DNA of 64,000 nt from positions 620,001 through 684,000 of the forward strand of contig LSRY02000010.1 in assembly GCA_001643675.2 (NCBI GenBank), in the 5' to 3' direction. Below the pieces are notes generated by a model. That model ran no database searches. It was not told where the DNA came from and worked only from the letters and a program-made list of their open reading frames with translations. The stretch is from Monocercomonoides exilis PA203 (lineage: Eukaryota; Protista; Preaxostyla). Of this stretch, positions 13,092 through 55,203 are shown one piece after another. The number at the start of each line of letters is the position of its first letter. The stretch's first letter is position 1. The translations under genes and the position numbers were made by a program.

Positions 13092-14189
13092 CTTTGAGAA
13101 AATAAAGCTCTTTTTAAATGTGATCTATTACATAATATTATTTAAGTTGTGAAACTGTTAATATTTTAGCAAAATTTTGATAATTGAAAATAATTGTCGA
13201 AAATGTTCGTTTATTCGTTTCATTTCGTGCTTTCTTTGTAAAAAAATTTTTTTTTTTTTTTTTTTTTTTTTGTGACAGACAAATATTTTTAAAATTAGTC
13301 ATGTCGAAGAGGTTTCGATGCAAATATCAAAATTTTTTGTTTAATAAAAGATTAACAATTTTGATAAGTTTTTCCTCCAAAAAATCAAAATTACAAAAAA
13401 TACTCAAACCACATTAAGTGATAAATATCAAATTGACTTTTTTTGAATTTTGCGAAAAATGAAGTTGCAGTGCAAGAAAAATGATTAAAGAATGCAAAAT
13501 TCTATAAAATATGAAAACAAAGCACTTGCAAATTTTCAAACATAATGACTTGTCAATTGGTATTGTTTATTAATTTCAAAGTTCATTTTGTTTAATTATT
13601 TTTATTATTAATTAATATCTTATGTTTTTATCAAATTTCTGTTTTTTCTCACAAAATATCACAGAAAAAATATAACAACCTGGCAATAGTATCATTTCAA
13701 TTTCAATGAAATTTCATGAATGGAAAAAGAAATAAGATCAAAAAATGCGATTATTTTCATTTTTGAAAATATAACTGAAAAGATTACAAAAAGAAAGAAA
13801 GAAAGAAAAAGGAAAAAGAAAAAAGAAAAAAAAGTTCCACATTATTAAACAACAATGGCTGGATGACCGAAGCAACACTTGGATGGAAAACGAAATGTGC
13901 ATGAGTGATTGTTTTTGAAATCATTCCTTTTTTCGGAGTGATGATAATTGAAAAGATTTTCATCAAAAGATAATATTATTTTAATTCAGATGATTAATGC
14001 ATCACACTAATTGAAAAAGCTTATATTTTATGTTTGAAAATGACATAAATATCTTCAAATGGGGGAAAATACGGACTTTCAAGCTTTTTTTGCACAAAAC
14101 ATGAAAAATTTGTTTCACTTATAACATTTTTTAACTTAACCAGATTTCAAAATAAATTTGATTTTCACAACTGTAAATAAACCTCTTTG

Positions 14190-14800
14190 ATGTTATAACA
14201 AAATGTTTTGTGACCTCACATGTATTTCATAAAATAAACCCATTTCTATTGTGTTTTTTGATCTCAAAAGTTAATGAAATGTGCATAATTCTCAATGAAA
14301 ATGCCTGAAGTGAAATATTTTCCCCCAAATAGTCTTTTCACTTTTCTGTGTTCATGAACAAATACATTAAAGAAGATTTTTGCCTGTCGTTTCAAACAGA
14401 ATAAACATAATTTCAAAAATAATCACAAATATTCTTTTCAGAAATTCAGGAAAGACAAACTCTTTTGGATCAAAAAGAAGAAAAATGTTTTCTTTTCCCA
14501 GTTTTTCGTCATTCGAGAGCATAACATGATAATTCGTTAAAAATCGCTGAAGCTCAATCGAAGTTGAAACATATATTTTTCACAACACATATTTAATTAA
14601 ACCTTTCGATCGAAGTGTCACTGTCAATAACAAAATATTCGGTTTTTCTTTTGAAAATATAATGTCAATTTCACATTATGTGTCTTTCGCTGATGAACAG
14701 CATTAGCGATAACCTTTCCTCAGGCTTTGAAAACCACATAATAGCCAGAAGCAATTATTTCTTCATTCGTTAAAAGTGGAGTAGTGATTAATCATTGGAA
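14190..14800 (+). pseudogene. Highly decayed pogo/DDE_1 transposase remnant
   Basis: 14581 reads HNTYLIKPFDRSV (cf. HTTHLTQPLDRFV at 52.9 kb). About 155 nt downstream, in a shifted frame, PEAIISSFVKSGV (cf. PKIV*KSFAECGI, 150 nt downstream in the other copy). Many stops and frameshifts; no TIRs found. Confidence 0.45.
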
Positions 14801-43398: not shown

Positions 43399-46188
43399 CT
43401 TCTCCCTCTGCATTTCGTCCTCAGCTCTCTTCTGCGCATCCGCCAGCACCCGAAAGTACTGCACATCTGCAAACTCGTATGCCACCTCAATCTCTGCCAT
43501 CGTCTTCAATGAAGCCACTGTCAACCCCAGCGCCTCCAGCTGCTTCTCATTCAGCAGCCGCTGCCGCCTCTTCTCCTCCTTCGCTGCTGCCTCTTTCTTC
43601 AGCTTGTCGCGAATCTCTGCAAACTTCTTCTCATCCTGCAATCTTTGTGCTTCTTCCTCTTTCTGTTCAGATTGGATTCGGCTCTGTTCAGCCTCTTCCT
43701 GTTTTCGCTTCTCCGCAAGCATCTTCTCCTCCTCCTTCCGCTTCTGCTTTTCTTGATCTGCCATTTTCTTCTGCTCGTCCCTCAGAATCTTCTCAATCGC
43801 CTTGTTTTCTTTCCCTTCCCTTTCCAGCTCCATTCTTCTCTGCCGCCATCGCTCTTCAATCTCCAGCTGCTTCTGCTTCGCTGCCATTGCTGCTTCTCTC
43901 TGCTTCTCCTGCTCTTTCTCTCGCTGCATCTGAATCTCCCTTCCTCTCTCTACCATCCGCACTCCTTCGTTCACTCGCCCTGCTGCAAGCTGCCACAGTC
44001 GGTCGTTTTTTGTGTCTAATTCGTCCTTCGAGCCATCTGCTTGTGCCTCTTTCGCTTCTGTTTTGCCTTTTTTCTTCTTGTTGTCGTCTTCTTCTATCAA
44101 TCTTGTTAACAATGTGTCATCTCCTGCCTTTCCCTCCGACCAATTCTTCCTCTCATTCTCCAAATTCCTCTTGTTCCGTCTGAAGTACTCGTTCATCACG
44201 ATTCCCCAGATCTCTGCAAAGGACTCCTTCACTCTGTCTCTCATGTCCTCGTCCAGCGTCTCCTGCTCCATCGCCCGCAGATACCGCACCCTCTCCTTCA
44301 TATATCGCAACCTGTCGCTCCTTCGCTGCTTGTTGATGTGCTGCCAGTTCCAGCTCTCCCGCTTCCTCCTCACGCCTTCCAGCACATTCTGGATCGCCCA
44401 CTGCCACATGTCCCGCAGCCGCTTCGACACCACTTTCCTCCCAATGGCAATCGTGTCCAGCATCCAAAGATGCGTCGAATCGACGTTTGCTGGTGCAACT
44501 GATGGTGAATTCGAAGGCGATGGTAAAGAAATGGGTGCATCGTGTGGAGTGAAAGACGTTACAACATTTGAAAAAGTAGTGATGGGCGATGAAACTGACA
44601 AAGGCGAAGAGGCAGAAGCAGATGAAGCTGATGATGCGGAAATACTGCTGTTTTGAGGTGAAGCCATTTGAGGAGGAGTTTGTGTGTTTTGTCGTGTTGC
44701 GTCAGTATTTTCTTTCAGTTGCTGTTGCTGTTGTTGTCTAATGTTCATCTGCGGGTGCAACTGAGAATTAGAGACGGAGGAATTTTGTTCTGTCACTTGT
44801 GAATTTGTTTCGCTCGATGGCAAAGTCTTTTCGTGGGTTGGCAATGGATTGAAAATAGGCTGATTCATAATATGCTGCGCATATTGTGAATGTGATGCTG
44901 TTGGTATTGATGGAGAAAGCATCTGATTAGAAGAAATAGCAGAAGGACGTGACGGTTGGCCCATGCCAGGAGAAGTATTGTTCGACGAGGAAGCTTCAGG
45001 ATGAGGTTGGAACTGTAGCTGGAACTGTTGCTGCTGCTGCTGCTGTTGTTGTTGAATCAGCTGCTTCTGCTGCTTTTCTTTCACGCGCTCTTCCAGCATC
45101 TTCACTTTTTTCAGCAGGTCAATCCCAACATCTCCGCTGAACGGCCGCATCATTTGCGACTTGTCAAATTCACCGGCATTCATCATCATCAGCATCGCCA
45201 TCAAAATCGGCCCAAGCCGATCATCACTGAGGTGAACTGATATCTGTTTTGATTTTGAGTTTAAGAAAATATTAATAAATAATGTGGAAGTGTTAAATAA
45301 ATTAAGTCTATTGGTCTAAGATTAATAGTCAATACATACTTGATCAACCATCACAGTGGCATCCACGATGGGGCGAGACTCAGAAGAAGAAGGAAGAACA
45401 TATTTCACTTTTATGCCTATAGTCATTGGATCCAATAAATAATTGATTTTTTTAACCGATACGGATCCATTTATTGATTCCTTCAAAATTTTCTGTATTT
45501 CAGATGATGGTCGCGAACTGATAAAAACAGAGTCCCAATAGAATCCGACATTCTCGAGTTTAAAAATCTTGTATTTAATGGGGGAATCACTGTCAATTGC
45601 TGGAAGCTCCCATCTTTCATTTGTTGATTGGGCACTTATCTTTGAAATGGTCAAACCAAAACAGATTGGAATTGAAGGATTTGAAGCGTCTTCGTATCTT
45701 ATGTGGACATGATATATATTCACAGTAGCCTTCAGCATGTAGCTTATAAGATTTGTTTGCAAAGCACCAAATGAAGGAACTGTAGATAAGTCAATTCCAG
45801 CTGCTTTGATTTGTTGAGTGGCTTTGTCTTCAAAAATAAGCATATTCTTTTTTTCATTCATTCTAGATATTTCCCTTTCTCTTGAAACGGTTGGAGATTT
45901 GTTTGTTTCATTTGGTCCAATAAATATGTAAATGTCTTCAGCATCAAATGATAAAGCAGTAAATTCTTCTTCATTACCCATTTTGCCATGTAACTTACCA
46001 ATGTATCCTTCATGAACATATAAAAAAGGAGCATTTTCGAGTGGACCACGTTTCATTTGCAAATTGAACATGTCAAAAGTTCGATCAAAAACTTTCGCTT
46101 GAATCATATCTGAAGTAACACGCTGAAGATAACGACGGAGATAAGGACCGACAACTTTCATAACAGCCCATCTGAACATACGGTCCAT
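17152..46188 (-). CDS. VPS13: Giant VPS13-family bridge-like lipid transfer protein, ~9,646 aa; exon 1 46188-45340, intron 45339-45244, exon 2 45243-17152
   Basis: Chorein-N (VHEGYIGKL; VHIRYED...FGLTISKISAQSTNERW); YFNNRVIAYEPLIEP; VAB/SHR-BD motifs SPYWIINCS, PFSVDTVG, TKTVTIAPRF, PYIIKNRT; GNPVGLMRGLKGGVTDL; ATG_C GVSGIVKEPVSGAQKEGVKGLFKGMGKG; terminal PH-like region. A 96-nt GTATGT...CAG intron joins the two ORFs in phase 0. Confidence 0.93.
43296..43410. repeat. Coding (CT)n/(GA)n microsatellite encoding a Glu-Arg dipeptide run within VPS13
   Basis: Polypyrimidine CTCTCT tract translating on the minus strand as EREREREREKEREIERERE. Confidence 0.85.
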
Positions 46189-46538
46189 GTTGTTCGGTCC
46201 TTCTTATTTTATGCAATAGAACAAAAATAATACAAAAATATTAAATATAAAGGGCGATTCGATTGATTATTAATTCTTAATTGTGATGATTAATAAACAA
46301 AAAAGATATTTTTAATCAATTTTTTGTTTGTGAATTCAAATTTTTTATATTTTCCTTTTTAGAACAAAATATATTTTTTGTCTATTGGAAAAAAATTATT
46401 TGACTATTTTTTTAGACTCAGCAGATGTTGACATAATTTTCAAAAAGAATTTGGTTGTTCCATTTTTTATTGAAAAAGATTGACACGAATTTTTTTATGA
46501 AAGTTAATTTATTATTTTCAAAAAAACATACAGATAAA

Positions 46539-46566
46539 GTTAGTGTCCACCATTATTGACACTAAC
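46539..46566. repeat. 28-bp collapsed remnant of the 54444-54849 MITE termini
   Basis: GTTAGTGTCCACCATTATTGACACTAAC equals the start of the left TIR (GTTAGTGT) joined to the end of the right TIR (AGTGTCCACCATTATTAACACTAAC, 1 mismatch). Confidence 0.7.
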
Positions 46567-46576
46567 AATATGACAA

Positions 46577-46714
46577 AAAATAACAGACATCGCAAAAAAT
46601 ACCGGACAAGATCGATTTCACAATAACTGCAAGAGGAAAAATTCTGACATTTTTCCTCTTGCAGTTATTGTGAAATCGATCTTGTCCGATATTTTTTGCG
46701 ATATCTGGTATTTT
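46577..46714. repeat. ~138-bp hairpin (about 66-bp arms, 6-nt loop), probable decayed fold-back element
   Basis: ...CGGACAAGATCGATTTCACAATAACTGCAAGAGGAAAAAT-tctgac-ATTTTTCCTCTTGCAGTTATTGTGAAATCGATCTTGTCCG...; about 3 mismatches in the outer arms. Confidence 0.85.
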
Positions 46715-47572
46715 ATGCGATTACTGATTCCAAAACAAGAAATATAGTCCGTGACAAAACCCGGGACAGGGACAAAACCCGGGACAATTGGAATAGGTTA
46801 TTTGCAAAAAGATATGGGTGAAAATTTTTGAAAAATCACTTTTTTTTAGCCTGATCTGTCCCACAAAAAATTTAGTTTTTGATTTCAATCACCATAATCA
46901 TTATTCAATAATTTTGTAATTCCTTTTGTGTATTATTCTACCTTATTTTTATGAATATCAACAGACAGGAACTTCCTTGATTTCATTTGTCATACAATGA
47001 ACATCGAAAAATTTTGTTAAAAAAAGCTAAATCATTCGAACAAATTAACCTAGATTTTTCTTCTTTCACATCTCTATCTTAAGAATTACTGTTTTTATTT
47101 CACTACACAATGTGAAAACAAACAACGTTCTTTTTAATTTTTAACAAAATTGATTTCAATGTGCTTTATCGAAACAATAAGTTTCACATTTTTTATTTCC
47201 AATGATTTTTCTTATCTTCATTCAAAAGAATGCAGTTTTATTTGCAAGAGATATTCATTGCAAATGATTAGAAAATATTGGATGTGTATCTGATAACTAA
47301 AGAAATTTCTTTTTTTAAAGAATGAAACTTTGATTAAAAAAGGTTTATTGGAAAAATGCAATCATTTAAGGTTAACAATAATAAGTTAATATGAAAGAAA
47401 ATCTTGAAATTATCTTTGCAATGATAATATTTCGGGCAATATTGTGACAACCATACAAGCTCCCACTTTTTTTATTAAAACAATCAGCTTTTTTTCATCA
47501 TTATGAAAAACATGTGCTTAACATTAAATGCATTTCATCGAACTTTTCTATTTCATCTTTTTCTTCACAACT

Positions 47573-50500
47573 TTAATCATCTCCTACGACACGTCGTTCC
47601 ACTCGCATTGAACATACATGTATGGAAGAGGAGCAAGTGATGAGCTGCCTCGTGAGCATCTGCACAGAGATGGTGCGCATGAAACAGTCTGGCCAGCACT
47701 CCGAGCAAGGAAAAAAAGAAGATTGTGTAGAATCAGATTACCAATCAATGGAGAGGATGTGGCTCACAGGGTTCCAATGTCTATGAGAATTACCGAAAAA
47801 AAGATTATCTTCTATCATTCAAAAAAGATCGAAAATGTTTCGGGGAAGGCAATAAATTCTTCACAGATTGAATAAGCCGTTAGCAGAGCAAGAGGAGAAG
47901 TGTCTGGAATTGGAGCAAAAGCTCCATTTGATTGGACATTTTCAAACAAAGTGAATGATTTCGCATTCTACTTCCAGTACTCGTATGTGGCGATAAGAAT
48001 AGGATGATTAATAGGCACGCATAATTCTGTGGATATCAGACTTGCAAATAACAATGATATTTCACCGGATCTTCATTCCCAATCGCAAGACTCACAGACT
48101 TTTATTACAGATCCAACAAATCCCTTCATTTCATTCTTTCCCTTCTTCTCTTCTTCTTCTTCTCTCATTTAGACCTCCTTCATACACACTGTTAGAACGC
48201 GTTCAGAACTCTGCACTCCAGCTCAATGTCTCCTCTCTCAGCAGAAGTGGCAGTTGTTGTAGAATATGAATGAGATGTTGAAGCAATTATGTATAATTTG
48301 CTCATTGAATGATCTGCGGGGGGCGGCGGTTGAGATCTCACGAGAGTGAAAGGAGGAGAAGCAGATGATGAATAGTAATTTGCAGTGAGAAAGAAGAGGC
48401 AGATCAATATTCACATTTGCAGTAAAATCAGCAGCTGAATTAAAAGGCTCAACCAAATTGAGTGCAGAATATTTTTTCATTAAATCCATTGCCGTTGAAT
48501 TCTGCAAAGCGGAGAAAGATTCCTATTTTGAGAACGATAGCTCATCTCTTCTCCCATGCACGCTGTTCTAACTGAATGTTCTTATCCCTTTCTCCTTCTG
48601 AAACAGCAGCGGTGATCCTTTCCTTGCTCATTTATTTCCCTTCCTGTGTGTCGCTTCTGCTTCCTCTTTGTACGGCCACCATCCCCTCCACTTCATCCCC
48701 CTTCCTCTTCGCAGTTCCGCACAGGTTTGCTTTAGAACGCTCTTCAGCGCACTCATCAGATCCAACTGCGTACTTGTCTGCCTCGTATCGGCAACCGCAA
48801 ACACAGACACTTCCTGTAACTTCCACACAAATTGCTCGTTTTCCTCGCTTTTTATGCAAACATAGCGGAGGGGCACATCCAATTCATCGCTCAAATCTTC
48901 AAAGACAGAATTAGATAAATCATTCAACGTGCAGTCCAATTTCCGCTCTCTTGTCAAAATTGGCGTTTGGCTTTCTTTCGCCTCTTGTTGCGCCTCGCTT
49001 GCCATTTTATTCTCCTTCTTGTTTGTTGGCGTGCAAGTCTCAGGGTGCGGTTGTAATATACGTTGGATGCAGCTCAACAGATTCTTGTCTTTTTCCTATA
49101 TCTTCTTTGCCATTTTCTTCATTTTCATGTGTTCCCATTCTTCTTTTCTTCTTCTTCTTCTTCTGTTCCTCCCACAATTTCATCAGACGAAGCTGTTTTT
49201 CTCTCTGCTTGTGTCTCTGCTCTCTTCGCTCGTCTTTATCGCTGATAATGGAGCTGTTGAAAAGGCATTCAGTTTCTTCTTTTTTCTTTGCTTTCTTTGA
49301 AGAGTCTCTTCTAATTAGTGAATAATTCTTGTTTTCTTCTGCATTAATTTCGTTTTCATTTTCATCATCATTGTTATCCCCATCATTTACAGGCGTTAAT
49401 GCCTTCCTCATCTTAATCAGTTCTCTTATCCTTCTCTCCTCTCTCCTCTCGTTCCTTGCTTCTCTCTCTCTCTCTCTCTCCTTCGCTCTCTCTCTTTCTC
49501 TCTTCCTCTTCTCCAGTTTCTCCGAATACCGCTCCACCATCCGAAACTCTGCAAACAGCGATAGCGCCTCAAACGCATCGGGATAGAGAACAAAATATTG
49601 TCTTTTCCTTCTTCCTCTGCTGTTGCTTCATACTCCTCATCTGCTGCTCTTCGTCTGTCAGAAATCTGTTTCCAGAAGAGCGAAGCAACGAGAAAGAAGA
49701 AGAAGAAGAGGAGGAGGAAGAAGAAGAAGAACGTGATGCACCAGAAGCAGCAGCCACTTGTGCACAGAGGTTGAGATAGAGCAGTCGGAGGAGGAGAGGA
49801 TGCATTGTTCCAATGCGGTGCGCCATGGTAATCTCAGAACGACGAGGTGGTTTGGGGTTCAGATAGAGATTGGTCACTTCTAGAGAAGAGCAGGAAAAAG
49901 ATGAGGACGAGGATAAGGAGGAAAACTATGATGTGGAGATGTCATGAATGATTGAAATGAATGTGTCGAAGAAGAAGAAGGGAAGAAGGTTTGATGTGCT
50001 TTTGGGGAGATAGAGAAAAGAAGAGAAGAGAAATGGATGAGAACGTACATTTGCCTTCAGTTGAAGCAAAACTGCATTTTTACTCGGATTGGCAAACAGA
50101 GCCTTAAGATGAGTTTGTAGCGAGTGGAGCATTTTAACCGAGAAAGATGTTTTGTCTGTTGATCAGTAAGATGCAAAATACATAATTGCTTTTCTTCAAC
50201 CTCTGAAAAGAATTGATTGGGATATTTTTTAGTTTGAATTGAGCGTTTCAAGGCAATCTGGATTCGCAGTGGACGAATGCATAAGATCTTTATGTGGCTC
50301 TGCTTGAAGAAAATTTGGATTTTCAATAAATTCCGTGTCTTTTGTGGGGGAAGAGACCTCTTAATTGTCTTCCGAAAATTCTTCCTTTCACGACAACTTA
50401 TCTCTTTCGCTTCGAACGCAAGCCCATTTCACATGTTCTTTCATTGCGACTGCAGTTCATCATATTTTCGATAGTTTGTTCCAATGAATAAAATGACTCT

Positions 50501-51288
50501 TCGTTCATTGTCCACTTTTCCAGGCTCCTGTGTATGTGTATGTTCTTCTTTCTCTTCCTTGGAGCAGAATTCTGGAGATTCTTCTAACAATCTCAATAAA
50601 TGCAACTTAAAAATAAATAAGAGAAAGAAAATAAAAAAAAAACCTTTGTGATGAATTGCTTTTTGAATATAATAAAAACATCAAAACTGCTGAAAAAGCT
50701 ATTATCTGATTTTCGTGTGTTATCTGCAACGTTCCATTATTACTATTTTTTGTGCTAACGCAAACTCTGATTTTGAAGAGCGTCTATTTCCATGAGTAAC
50801 ATTCAACAATCGCATGTCTATTTTTTCCTGTACCAGTGACCTTAAATTATCTTGAGAGACGGTTGTTCAAATGCATCCATTGACAATTTGATGAAGGAGT
50901 TTAATTTTAAGACTTCGAATGAATGAATGCCTTTGACTAGAAAAAAGAATTTTTAGTAGTTTTGCGTAAAAAAAAATTCAAGGCATAGTAATTAATTGGT
51001 AAGCTTTTGCTCTTTCCTGATCATAAAAAAATTGTCTGATGAGAAAACGGCAAGATTAATAAAGTATGATCTCTCAGCACTGCATTGGCCATACCATATG
51101 AAGAAAAAACAAGACAGGAACGACGGCTGTTCTTTATGAGAAATATACTCAAGATTTCATAGCGTGCTGTTCCGTTTAGAAAATAAAAAAAGGAAAATCG
51201 AATATTGGTAAGAAACGCAAGGATCCGTTGTGATATTTAAGTTTCCAGCTGCCCGGATTAATGACAGAGAACAACAGATAATTACCAT
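47573..51288 (-). pseudogene. Decayed cargo gene: host-style low-complexity protein, possibly with degenerate N-terminal RRM-like segments
   Basis: Chain of short minus-strand ORFs in changing frames (49877-49569, 49540-49040, 49077-48628, 48507-48238) with coding-like composition, Ser runs and ER repeats, broken by stops and frameshifts; AT-rich intron-like gaps near 50580-50700 and 50937-50990. Boundaries are approximate. Confidence 0.6.
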
Positions 51289-51397
51289 TTGTTTAAATTC
51301 AATTTTTAAATTGCGCAACACGTCAAAATTTTTTAATATCTGTAGACATTCTTGGATTCCATCATTAAACTTCTGATAAATTCATTTGATTGGATAT

Positions 51398-51654
51398 GGG
51401 TGATTATTTTTGAAAACATAACTTTTTTCGGTGTGGATATTTTTTGAAACTTGTTGATTTTTGGAAAAAAATATTTGTTTTCAAATGCACAATTCATAAC
51501 GACTGTGTTTGTAATTTGTGTTTTTTCTCAAATGAAGATGATGATTTCTTTAATAAGTTTTTTCCTTTTTCAGTGTTCTTTTGTTGATATTCAAGGAAAA
51601 TTTTCGAACCGAAATTTTTGAAAGAAAAAAATTTGATATCAAAAATAATCACCC
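51398..51654 (+). mobile_element. 257-bp MITE of the GGGTGA family, TSD ATAT
   Basis: ATAT|GGGTGATTATTTTTGA...TCAAAAATAATCACCC|ATAT; interior homologous to the reverse complement of 53740-53997. Confidence 0.85.
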
Positions 51655-52256
51655 ATATGTTATTATTAAAGCGATTTGTTAGATATTGCTCAAATTCAAA
51701 ACATCAAAAGCTTGGAGATTTAAGGAACTTGTGTTGATACGAATTCAAGCACTTTTATCCTAATTATTCAAAGAGAAACTTCAGTGTGGCATTGAACTCC
51801 TATTATCTTGCTTTGTTGAACGTTCTTTTATTGAAGAAAATGTATTCAAGTGATAAAAACTAATTCATTTTGATCAAAATATGTTTTTAAATCAAAAATT
51901 CTTTAAAGACATATTCTGAAAAAAAAAAATCAATGTATGATTAACAATAAAGAGTTTGATTAAATTTTCATAAAAAATATTGAATTTCATTAACTGTAAT
52001 GGGTGATGTTTTTTGATCTGTGGTGATTTTTCAAAAATTTTCACCCATATCAACAAGATTAAATATGAGAACTGCTTTGTTTTTTTGTTGTGAATGAATT
52101 ATCCGAAAGATTAAATAATTTCAAATGGAAAAACTCAAAAATCCGAAACGATGTGATTGCAGCATTGATAGATAATAAAAAGAATCGCGAAAAGAATAAT
52201 AAGAAGATTTTATGAGAAGTGACAATTTTGCTGAACTGTGAACAAATGCATTCTTC

Positions 52257-54248
52257 TCAATAAAAGTTATGAACCAAAATTAAAAATTGATCCCCAAGCG
52301 CTTTCTCGAGTGTATTTTCTTTTCTTTTTTTCACCGGTTTGCAGTTCATTTTCGGAAGAATTTTCTGATGGTTAACATGTTCGTTTTCTGTTATAGGCAA
52401 TTTGCACATAACATCATCGCATTCAATGGTTTTCTTTTCTTGTTTCTGAGTTTTGAAAGTTTCTGTATTTTCAGATATGCAAGAGCTTTTGTCCATTATG
52501 TTCGATGATTCGTTTTCACAACATTTCGAAGTGTTATGTTTCAATGAAAAACTAGTAGGAAGACTTTTTTCTTTTTTTCTAATTAAATGGTGAAGTTTTC
52601 GAAGAAATCATCCCCTGTTATTAATTTCAGGCTGATGCTGTTTGCACGTGAAGAATCGTTTGAAGATTTTTCAACCATCGAAGAGGCTTCAATGTTCTGC
52701 GGAAGACACTGATAAACGGCAGAAGTGTCAAACGGATGAATTCCACATTCTGCAAATGATTTTCAAACAATTTTCGGGCAAAGAAAATAGATGACTGCAT
52801 CAGAAACAGCTGGAATTAATGCTTTTCGGTAGGAAGATATAGAGGAATCTGAAGGAACTTGAAATGATTTTTTCAAGCAATTCTTGAAATGCGCAAATAC
52901 AAATCTGTCCAAGGGCTGAGTCAGGTGCGTAGTATGTGAAGGAAGAATAAGAAGATGTATCAAATGTTTTCTGCACCAAGACATTACCGGAAAACAAAGG
53001 CGAGACGTGAGGCCATCGAGAATAATTAAAGCACGAGCAGATGATCCATGCAACTCGATTCTTTTCTCATTAATTTTGTGCAAAAATATTTCTGTCATTA
53101 TCATTTCTAAATCATTTCCACTCATCCATCCAGTTCCATTAGCGAAACAGTTAATTCGGTGGTATTTTCATTCTTTAAGATCCACGGATAGCGTGTGGGA
53201 CGGCCACAACATGATCGGATCCAAAGATGTGCCATCAGCAAATATAGTGAAAAACAATGTTACGTTTTTGCGTCTTTGCGACTCAGGAATAAGAGTGCAT
53301 TGTGTTTCTTTTGAAACAACTATTTTTTCTTCTGACTGTTTCATTTATACTCCTGTTTCATCCATATTGATGATCAAGTCAGAAGAAATTTGATTGTCAT
53401 TTATCACTTTTTTCTATAAAGAGAACCAACTTCTCATATTTTCTATTGTTGAACACTGAAGTCGACGAAGATCAATATATTTTGGTTTAATCAATTTCAA
53501 TAAATTGGATTTCTCTATAAATCTGCGAGCCCATTTTGCACTAATTTTAAATCACTTCAAAGAAGGTGTCTGGTCCTTGTTTTTTTTAATCATAACATTT
53601 TCTGCCTGTTAAAAATAAAATTGATTGATTTATCAAAATTAAAAACGACAGACAAATCTGATGATATCTGAAACAGTTGTTTTATTTGAAGAAAATATTT
53701 GAGCGATTGCACAATCCTCAATTTCTTCTTCTTCTTCTTGTGTGACTATTTTTGAAATCATATTTTTTTCAAACAAAATTTTCGGTTAAAAATAAGATCT
53801 TGAATATTATAAAATGAACATTGAAAAGAGAAAAGGCTTATTGAATTCATTTTAATCTTTGATTCGGAAAAACCATTTGTTTAAAATAACAATTATTAAG
53901 ATTTTTCTCTTTTGAATTTAAATGTTTCTTTCAAAAATTAACAATCTTTGAATAATATACACACCGAAAAAAGATATGATTTCAAAAATAATCACCCTCT
54001 TTGTCAAACAATCCTGGACGTCCAATATGATGAGGATATCTTCCTGCTTTTATTGAAGCAATGTGTCGGTAAACTGATGAATGTGAAATGTTTTTGTCTT
54101 TTACGAGATCAGAAGGTTTCACTCCATCTTGTTTTAATAGATAATCAACTTTTTCGGACTTTGTTGGTTATCTGCGGTATTCTGCGGAGGCCTTTATTGG
54201 TGACAACTTTTTGTCCGTCAGAGGGGGTGAGATTTGTGCTTTTTTCAT
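52257..54248 (-). pseudogene. pogo/Fot-type transposase pseudogene (HTH, CENP-B-type HTH, DDE_1, DD35D) with a 48-nt intron (53653-53606) and a MITE insertion (53997-53740)
   Basis: ATG 54248; ISHSSVYRH...GRPGLFDK/EEEEEIEDC...FKISAKWARRF; NMDETG; GWMS; LIILDGLTSR; LPSHTTHLTQPLD (35 residues between 2nd and 3rd Asp); KSFAECGIHPFD. At least six in-frame stops and no frameshift until ~52570. Confidence 0.9.
53740..53997 (-). mobile_element. 258-bp MITE of the GGGTGA family inserted in the transposase, TSD AAGA (TCTT on +)
   Basis: TCTT at 53736-53739 and 53998-54001. Removing the element plus one TSD restores the in-frame sequence GRPGLFDKEEEEEIEDC. The minus-strand end GGGTGATTATTTTTGAAATCATATCTTTTTTCGGTGTG matches the start of the 51398 copy. 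Confidence 0.85.
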
Positions 54249-54443
54249 TCGATTAATGGAAATATGATCAACAAAATTTATAATGTCTATCAACAGGAGA
54301 TAAGCAAGATTTAAAAAACCTTACAAAAAATATAATAAAAGTTTGTCTGATTAATTTTTTTTCAATTTGTTTGGAAGTTGAATTCACATTTGAAATATGA
54401 TTTTGTCACAGAAATGTCCCGGGTTTTGTCAAGGACTATAATA

Positions 54444-54849
54444 TAGTTAGTGTTAATAATGGTGGACACTTTCAATAACTGTGGACAGTAGCATTTTCTC
54501 AACAACCGTTGATAGTTGCTTTTTGACAATTAACCCAATTATTCCTTCAAAGAATATGAACTTATTAGTCATTCAAAGATGAAACAACTTGCTCTGCAGA
54601 ATTTTGAAAAAAACATTTTTAATTTACGGAGAAACTACGAAAATTTAATTTCTTAGGGTTTCTCCGAAAATTAAAAATGTTTTTTTCAAAATTCTGCAGA
54701 GCAAGTTGTTTCATCTTTGAATGACTAATAAGTTCATATTCTTTGAAGGAATAATTGGGTTAATTGTCAAAAAGCAACTATCAACGGTTGTTGAGAAAAT
54801 GCTACTGTCCACAGTTATTGAAAGTGTCCACCATTATTAACACTAACTA
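54444..54849. mobile_element. 406-bp near-perfect palindromic (fold-back) MITE flanked by TA
   Basis: TA|TAGTTAGTGTTAATAATGGTGGACACT...AGTGTCCACCATTATTAACACTAACTA|TA; ~190-bp arms essentially identical, with a short imperfect centre at ~54636-54657. Confidence 0.92.
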
Positions 54850-55203
54850 TACATTTGCATATTATCTTAAAGAATAATAAAAATAGGAAAATCTTATAAA
54901 TATCAATTTCAGAAACAAGAAAATTAATTAAAATTATATTTATTATTTTTGTTTTGAAGTGATTTTCTCTGAATGAAATGAAAACAGATATATTTTTTTT
55001 ATCAAAAAATATTTGACATGAAGAATGAAGAATTAACAAAATAGTCAGATAAGGAATGATTTTAATTTATAAAAAAATTCGACAGAAATAATTGTGAAGT
55101 TTGCACATTATTTCTAAAAATTTCTCGATCAAATAAAGCATAGATCTAGTTTTTCCATTAGATCAGACTTTGTTGAGATTTTTAAAGAAAGTGTATCTTA
55201 AAG

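Follow-up and report, generated by a model that had tools for sequence, protein, structure and literature searches.

Three transposons with GGGTGA ends in Monocercomonoides exilis are very probably non-autonomous members of a Sola2-type cut-and-paste lineage

Three DNA segments that share GGGTGA...TCACCC ends lie within a pogo-type element of the protist Monocercomonoides exilis PA203 (Preaxostyla), one of them nested in another, and they raise the question of which kind of transposon they are and which enzyme moves them. The window analysed here is a stretch of 64,000 nucleotides (GenBank assembly GCA_001643675.2, contig LSRY02000010.1, positions 620,001 to 684,000 of the forward strand), and positions in it are counted from its first letter. 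A first-pass annotation, made from the sequence alone, had described the three segments as a possibly undescribed family with terminal inverted repeats (TIRs) and 4-bp target-site duplications (TSDs). We found that they are real cut-and-paste transposons generating 4-bp TSDs and conclude that they are, with high probability, non-autonomous members of a Sola-superfamily (Sola2-type) cut-and-paste lineage in M. exilis. The genome searched was the PA203 assembly, 82,301,135 bases in 101 contigs.

The three segments are a 5,231-bp element, here called long-type, and two MITEs (miniature inverted-repeat transposable elements) of 257 and 258 bp (Table 1). The motif GGGTGA(W)(W)ATTTTTGA stands at all six element ends, and a search with the 16-nt end motif, allowing at most two mismatches, returned nine matches in the window, including all six claimed ends, against 0.5 expected by chance. 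The two ends of the 5,231-bp element are perfectly complementary over 29 nt, ATAT flank included. The two MITEs belong to the same family but to different subfamilies and are 72-74% identical in inverted orientation. Read directly, the flanks are ATAT on both sides of the 5.2-kb element and of the nested MITE, and TCTT (AAGA on the opposite strand) on both sides of the MITE in the pogo transposase gene. All three insertions have paralogous empty sites in which the 4-bp target is present in a single copy, several of these sites being known from alignment coordinates only. The 258-bp MITE is absent from seven pogo paralogues, where its flanks abut and share exactly 4 bases (for example, C32:413346-413782 and C32:412919-413349); four pogo copies lack the 5.2-kb element and show the same 4-base overlap (for example, C14:2058479-2058553 and C14:2058550-2058904); and for the nested MITE the sister copies L041 and L042 read ..gattggATATgttat.. 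with a single ATAT.

Table 1. Features of the window that bear on the GGGTGA-ended elements
Feature	Position	Strand	Details
Host pogo-type element	46743..54440	-	26-nt inverted repeats, TA flanks; multiple paralogues in the genome
Non-autonomous long-type Sola2-like element, 5,231 bp	46816..52046	+	73 bp inside the pogo left end; carries the nested MITE
Left TSD copy (ATAT) of the 5.2-kb element	46812..46815	.	Right copy at 52047-52050
Left TIR of the 5.2-kb element	46816..46839	+	GGGTGAAAATTTTTGAAAAATCAC; ~60 bp conserved ('..TTTTTTTTAGCCTGATC' end)
Right TIR of the 5.2-kb element	52023..52046	-	~41 bp conserved ('..CACCACAGATCAAAAA' end)
257-bp MITE nested in the 5.2-kb element	51398..51654	+	TSD ATAT at 51394-51397 and 51655-51658
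258-bp MITE inside the pogo transposase gene	53740..53997	-	TSD TCTT at 53736-53739 and 53998-54001
Lys/Glu/Arg-rich open reading frame (ORF) remnant, 1.5 kb	48381..49923	-	Broken and shortened; inside the 5.2-kb element
Probable old, decayed 526-bp relative	13903..14428	+	Ends GAGTGATTGTTTTTGA and TCAAAAATAATCACAA; weak, flanks GCAT/ATAT agree at 2/4 positions

Analysis of a genome-wide sample of 41 elements showed a perfect 4-bp TSD in 32 of them and agreement at three or more of the four positions in 39. At other lengths, perfect matches were found at 2 bp (22 elements) and at none of 3 bp or 5-8 bp; the 2-bp matches are a mere echo of the ATAT periodicity. The 32 perfect TSDs comprise ATAT (19), ATTT (6), AAAT (3) and one each of ATCT, ATGT, AAGT and TCTT, so that 28 of the 32 are ATAT, ATTT or AAAT and the target consensus is AWWT. 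Because 13 of these TSDs (ATTT, AAAT, ATCT, ATGT, AAGT and TCTT) are non-palindromic, both a TA duplication and a mere extension of the inverted repeats are excluded. Thus, the shared ends and the 4-bp TSDs described in the first-pass annotation are real in the window and consistent across the genome-wide sample, with none at 5 bp, and its view of a second DNA-transposon family, separate from its pogo host, that has struck this host repeatedly holds as well: the pogo element was hit twice, and one copy of the family is nested in another.

Pattern counts across the genome gave 1,953 MITE-type ends, that is, about 1,000 MITEs of ~255 bp; 83 long-type ends (GGGTGAAAATTTTTGAAAAATCAC), with ~35 pairs spaced 3.3-5.7 kb apart; and 403 giant-type ends (GGGTGATTTTTTTTGATATCATAAAAA) of ~20-kb elements. 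The reversed control patterns for the three types of ends had zero matches in the genome. A copy identical to the nested MITE (100%) lies at C15:825524-825780, and the MITE in the pogo transposase gene is 94% identical to C56:278920-279177. Three full-length sisters of the 5.2-kb element, each with 85% identity, are found at C27:650484-655372, C2:390189-395058 and C45:499325-507743; other long-type copies are 95-98% identical among themselves. Long-type elements also insert into or beside one another, as seen in the right flank of L031, which is 90% identical to the interior of L039 (L039:647-744). The paper on the Oxford Nanopore Technologies assembly of M. exilis reported 46% repeats, with 35% of the genome unclassified, and named no transposon families (PMC8767320).

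The first-pass annotation had seen no autonomous copy in the window, and tblastn likewise found no Sola-type transposase there; nor is there a transposase remnant in the window or in twelve sampled long-type elements of 3.3-7.5 kb (L031-L042). The long transposase-encoding copies for which that annotation had proposed to look were found outside the window, in two forms. The first, C40:783790-794183, measures 10.4 kb; it bears both long-type ends and an ATAT TSD and contains, ~530 bp from one end, an intact transposase ORF of 796 aa without a deubiquitinase domain, located at C40:791270-793657 on the minus strand. Compared with the 5.2-kb element, this C40 element matches the left end over 64 bp with its transposase-proximal end (96.9% identity) and the right end over 41 bp with its opposite end (97.6% identity). 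The left ATAT of the C40 element adjoins, at C40:783785, the end of a different element.

The second form is represented by C11:761813-781627, a 19.8-kb element nested in a 5.5-kb long-type element; an ATAT TSD of its own and GGGTGA ends, perfect over 27 nt, surround its transposase. The 25-kb end pair C11:759138-784478, considered as a single giant element, was rejected, as it consists of this long-type element and the nested 19.8-kb one. The latter encodes a 1,097-aa ORF (L051:2591-5881, corresponding to C11:770590-773880) with a USP/UCH deubiquitinase domain (Pfam UCH, E=5e-14) located N-terminally to the Sola2 core; the transposase core is 32% identical to the C40 protein (BLASTP, E=4e-52). 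At least 13 further deubiquitinase-fused transposase genes are found ~8-12 kb from giant-type ends; the end pair C1:1577371/1596838, for instance, brackets the fused transposase gene C1:1588152-1588997. MITE ends and giant-type ends are identical at 20 of 21 bases, whereas long-type ends match MITE ends much less well. TIRs are therefore common to transposase-bearing and derived elements in both pairs, the C40 element with the 5.2-kb element and the giant elements with the MITEs. In an unrelated metagenomic homologue, P0134 (1,136 aa), the UCH domain is C-terminal to the core (E=1.1e-24), so that the pairing of UCH and transposase recurs beyond the M. exilis genome in another domain order.

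Further genes of the same kind occur elsewhere in the genome. Two intact Sola2-type transposase genes, of 853 and 770 aa (L056:4093-6651 and L057:3679-5988), are 51-52% identical to the C40 protein; they were rejected as partners of the GGGTGA family because no GGGTGA ends lie within 10 kb, and this suggests either additional Sola2-type families whose ends differ or copies that have been domesticated. Another transposase paralogue (C23:762889-764211) lies within an open frame of 4,133 aa. A 14.5-kb pair of long-type ends on C17 (L043) encloses adjacent ORFs of 214 and 632 aa (L043:864-3497, corresponding to C17:435987-438620), with hAT-like motifs noticed by eye (C.NH..NL, STRW) and no Pfam hit; these could be a nested element or cargo.

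The M. exilis transposases carry, in this order, the blocks STFYK, RTDxCxxC, H..QR, DFK(E/Q)N, FS(D/E)VL..S.Y.I, W.D.G.HF(K/R) and HGKS.VD..F. The known dictyostelid set of Sola2 comprises DFa-1/2/3 of Dictyostelium fasciculatum and PPa-1/4/5 of Polysphondylium pallidum, and the supplementary sequences of Sola2_DFa-2 and Sola2_PPa-1 begin with STFYK, RTDxCPxC, IHK..QR and (L/C)DFKEN and continue with LGMV, FSDVLNHCS.Y.I, FW(S/C)D.A.HFKS and YHGKS.(V/C)D.HF (Bao and Jurka 2013, PMC3627910). By-eye comparison showed every conserved block of these two proteins in the M. exilis transposases, in the same order, and a hand count gave ~30-48% identity between the C40 protein and DFa-2 inside the blocks. 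The mention of Sola2 in the first-pass annotation is thus borne out, as the linked transposase corresponds block by block to published Sola2 proteins and Sola2 makes 4-bp AWWT TSDs.

An HMMER search with an eight-sequence profile retrieved 4,502 homologues, both eukaryotic and metagenomic, at E<=1e-3. Across 41 diverse homologues, TDxCxxC, a His, the Asp of DFKxN and HGKxxxD are invariant, and W.D..HF is nearly so. The candidate catalytic triad would consist of D145 and the Asp of HGKxxxD, both invariant, and a second Asp present in more than 90% of the 41 homologues. An AlphaFold model of the transposase core (pLDDT, the predicted local distance difference test, 84.7) has its best Protein Data Bank matches in the IstA (IS21) transposase, retroviral integrases, Tn5, Hermes and Mos1, which indicates an RNase H-like DDE/D fold through a weak similarity (Foldseek E=2.5e-4 to IstA, TM-scores ~0.3). 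Names contributed little: a word-based protein search returned just 4-6 relatives, all unnamed, and none of the 10 homologue clusters looked up from the HMMER search bore an informative name. The label DUF7869, taken from ESM Atlas clusters, was rejected for the transposase, having no Pfam support even at E<=10. When all candidate ORFs were scanned against Pfam, the only matches were to UCH, in the fused transposase, and to DDE_1, in pogo.

Several of these observations weigh against the assignment to Sola2. The match to the published transposases is a by-eye, unscored comparison of blocks, and the references were Sola2 sequences only. Pfam, which has no Sola model, yields no transposase hit for these proteins. 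The C40 protein differs from more than 90% of the homologues in having Glu in place of Asp at the second catalytic position, and its closest paralogue (68% identity) is a pseudogene full of stops; the C40 copy, the sole intact one detected between long-type ends, may thus be inactive. Except in one element, giant-type ends and transposase genes are linked by their coordinates only, and passengers and transposase-bearing elements have only 21-64 terminal bases in common.

The superfamily is therefore firmer than the subgroup, which most probably is Sola2, judging from the conserved blocks. The subgroup is the less certain of the two because AWWT is also described as a hallmark of Sola1 and the comparison covered Sola2 references only. 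The insect Sola1 MITEs (Sola1_NA) resemble the M. exilis ones in length (250-700 bp), in their 4-bp AWWT/AWDT TSDs and in ends that begin with GG, but these ends read GGACCGTTTATTTTGA... and the autonomous partner encodes a Sola1 transposase (Zhang et al. 2013, PMC3845634). A 4-bp AWWT TSD is hence not diagnostic of Sola2 alone (PMC3845634). Membership of the family in the Sola1 or Sola3 group is nevertheless unlikely, given that all blocks of the two dictyostelid Sola2 proteins are present in order with ~30-48% identity inside them, and that dictyostelid Sola2 elements show the same spectrum of AT-rich AWWT TSDs (ATAT, AAAT, ATTT) and the same cargo-swapping habit, with chimeric families sharing one arm (PMC3627910).

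The dictyostelid Sola2 elements are similar to the M. exilis ones in their 4-bp AWWT TSDs, short TIRs and ordered transposase blocks with a candidate D-D-D triad, and also in being chimeric and cargo-carrying, with families that have one arm in common and are wholly different in the remainder. They differ in that their published ends do not read GGGTGA; nor do they read GRG, which the first-pass annotation had taken for a shared feature of Sola2. The ~1,000-copy MITE, the 3-6-kb transposase-less derivatives, the ~20-kb autonomous elements and the metamonad host are features of the M. exilis side, where the transposase of the ~20-kb elements is fused to a USP/UCH deubiquitinase and no Fanzor gene was seen.

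It is even less probable that the family represents a new superfamily and that the transposase genes inside GGGTGA ends are nested foreign elements or cargo. Such a reading would accommodate passengers that share just their termini with the transposase-bearing copies and a transposase that no Pfam model matches. However, no inner repeat pair was found around the transposase in the C40 element, the transposase of the 19.8-kb element is framed by that element's own ATAT TSD and GGGTGA ends, perfect over 27 nt, many of the 403 giant-type ends adjoin transposase genes, and the transposase matches published Sola2. As far as the searched literature shows, the family is undescribed for M. exilis. The proposal of a possibly undescribed family thus stands at the level of the family and its host but not for a new kind of element, as Bao, Jurka and Kapitonov reportedly defined the Sola superfamily in 2009.

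A Tc1/mariner-pogo-like family with a TA TSD, in which ATAT would consist of TA and one conserved base per TIR end, is compatible with the 19 palindromic ATAT duplications (T-GGGTGA..TCACCC-A ends plus TA) but has next to no probability in view of the 13 non-palindromic TSDs, the empty sites with exactly 4 bases once and the linked transposases, which give no DDE_1 hit and are not Tc1-like. The piggyBac, Kolobok and Tc1/mariner-pogo elements all cut and paste with short TSDs at AT-rich targets; piggyBac and Kolobok duplicate TTAA and Tc1/mariner-pogo elements duplicate TA, neither of which fits the observed TSD spectrum. TTAA accounts for 0 of the 32 perfect TSDs, in agreement with the earlier judgement that Tc1/mariner and piggyBac are poor fits, and the pogo element in the window is a target of the GGGTGA family and no relative of it.

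For a Sola2-type lineage, the following course of events can be proposed. The TIRs that start with GGGTGA would be bound by a DDD/E transposase of RNase H-like fold; the element would then be excised and reinserted at AWWT sites with a 4-bp stagger, the repair of which would yield the 4-bp TSD. The window contains passengers only, namely members of the ~255-bp MITE family and the 5.2-kb long-type element. Because MITE and giant-type ends are so nearly identical, the deubiquitinase-fused transposase probably mobilises the MITEs in trans. The long-type elements may be moved by the C40-type enzyme or, through cross-mobilisation, by the fused one. At this locus, the pogo insertion was followed by that of the 5.2-kb element into pogo and then by that of the MITE into the 5.2-kb element, and a separate MITE struck the pogo transposase gene. 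The nested MITE insertion appears to be very recent, because an identical copy exists elsewhere. Together, the 100% identical MITE pair and the 95-98% identical long-type copies suggest recent activity, and the lineage may still be active at present.

The charged ORF whose remnant lies in the 5.2-kb element recurs in Sola2-type elements of several sizes. The sister copies also have it, and an intact version of 459 aa (L047:5494-6870) is found in the 19.8-kb element; in a tblastn search this ORF matched the remnant with 71% identity over 147 aa and 56% over 100 aa, the stretch being held in common with C11:777494-778870. The remnant alone has at least 309 candidate matches genome-wide. The ORF belongs to no Pfam family and could represent either captured cargo DNA or a gene accessory to the lineage. 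Other long-type elements carry fragments that resemble, by eye only, repeat-rich surface proteins.

The transposase of the host pogo element is broken; a minus-strand ORF at 52763-53125 matches Pfam DDE_1 (E=7.7e-11). The element sits in a foldback-like repeat (flanks 46530-46742 and 54441-54851) with palindromes on both sides, one with 69-nt arms (46574-46717) and one with 194-nt arms that are 99% complementary (54442-54851); positions 46530-46571 are the inverted complement of 54441-54482. Farther away, the minus strand of the window contains an uninterrupted ORF of 9,350 aa (17152-45204) and, upstream of it, an ORF of 288 aa (45322-46188), which together span 17152-46188. The smaller ORF resembles, by eye only, the N-terminus of VPS13/chorein; if VPS13-like, this would be a giant, nearly intron-less gene with long Ser-rich low-complexity tracts.

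The known working of Sola elements is unchanged by these results. What they provide is a single Sola2-type lineage, defined by its ends and target, to which ~1,000 MITEs, ~40 mid-size and ~200 large elements are assigned, and with it an annotation rule for M. exilis: GGGTGA ends plus a 4-bp AWWT TSD. In addition, a little-studied superfamily gains a metamonad host, and matched pairs of passengers and transposases become available. A more far-reaching possibility, which we regard as tentative and rather doubtful, is an active three-tier Sola2 system in which a deubiquitinase-fused transposase, a single-copy Glu-variant transposase, or both, would drive the ~1,000-copy MITE and 3-6-kb elements with interchangeable cargo (surface-protein gene fragments, the charged ORF). 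If this were true, Sola2 would rank among the main drivers behind gene-fragment shuffling and the 35% 'unclassified' repeats in this genome, and the charged ORF would be a previously unrecognised Sola2 accessory gene and not captured host DNA.

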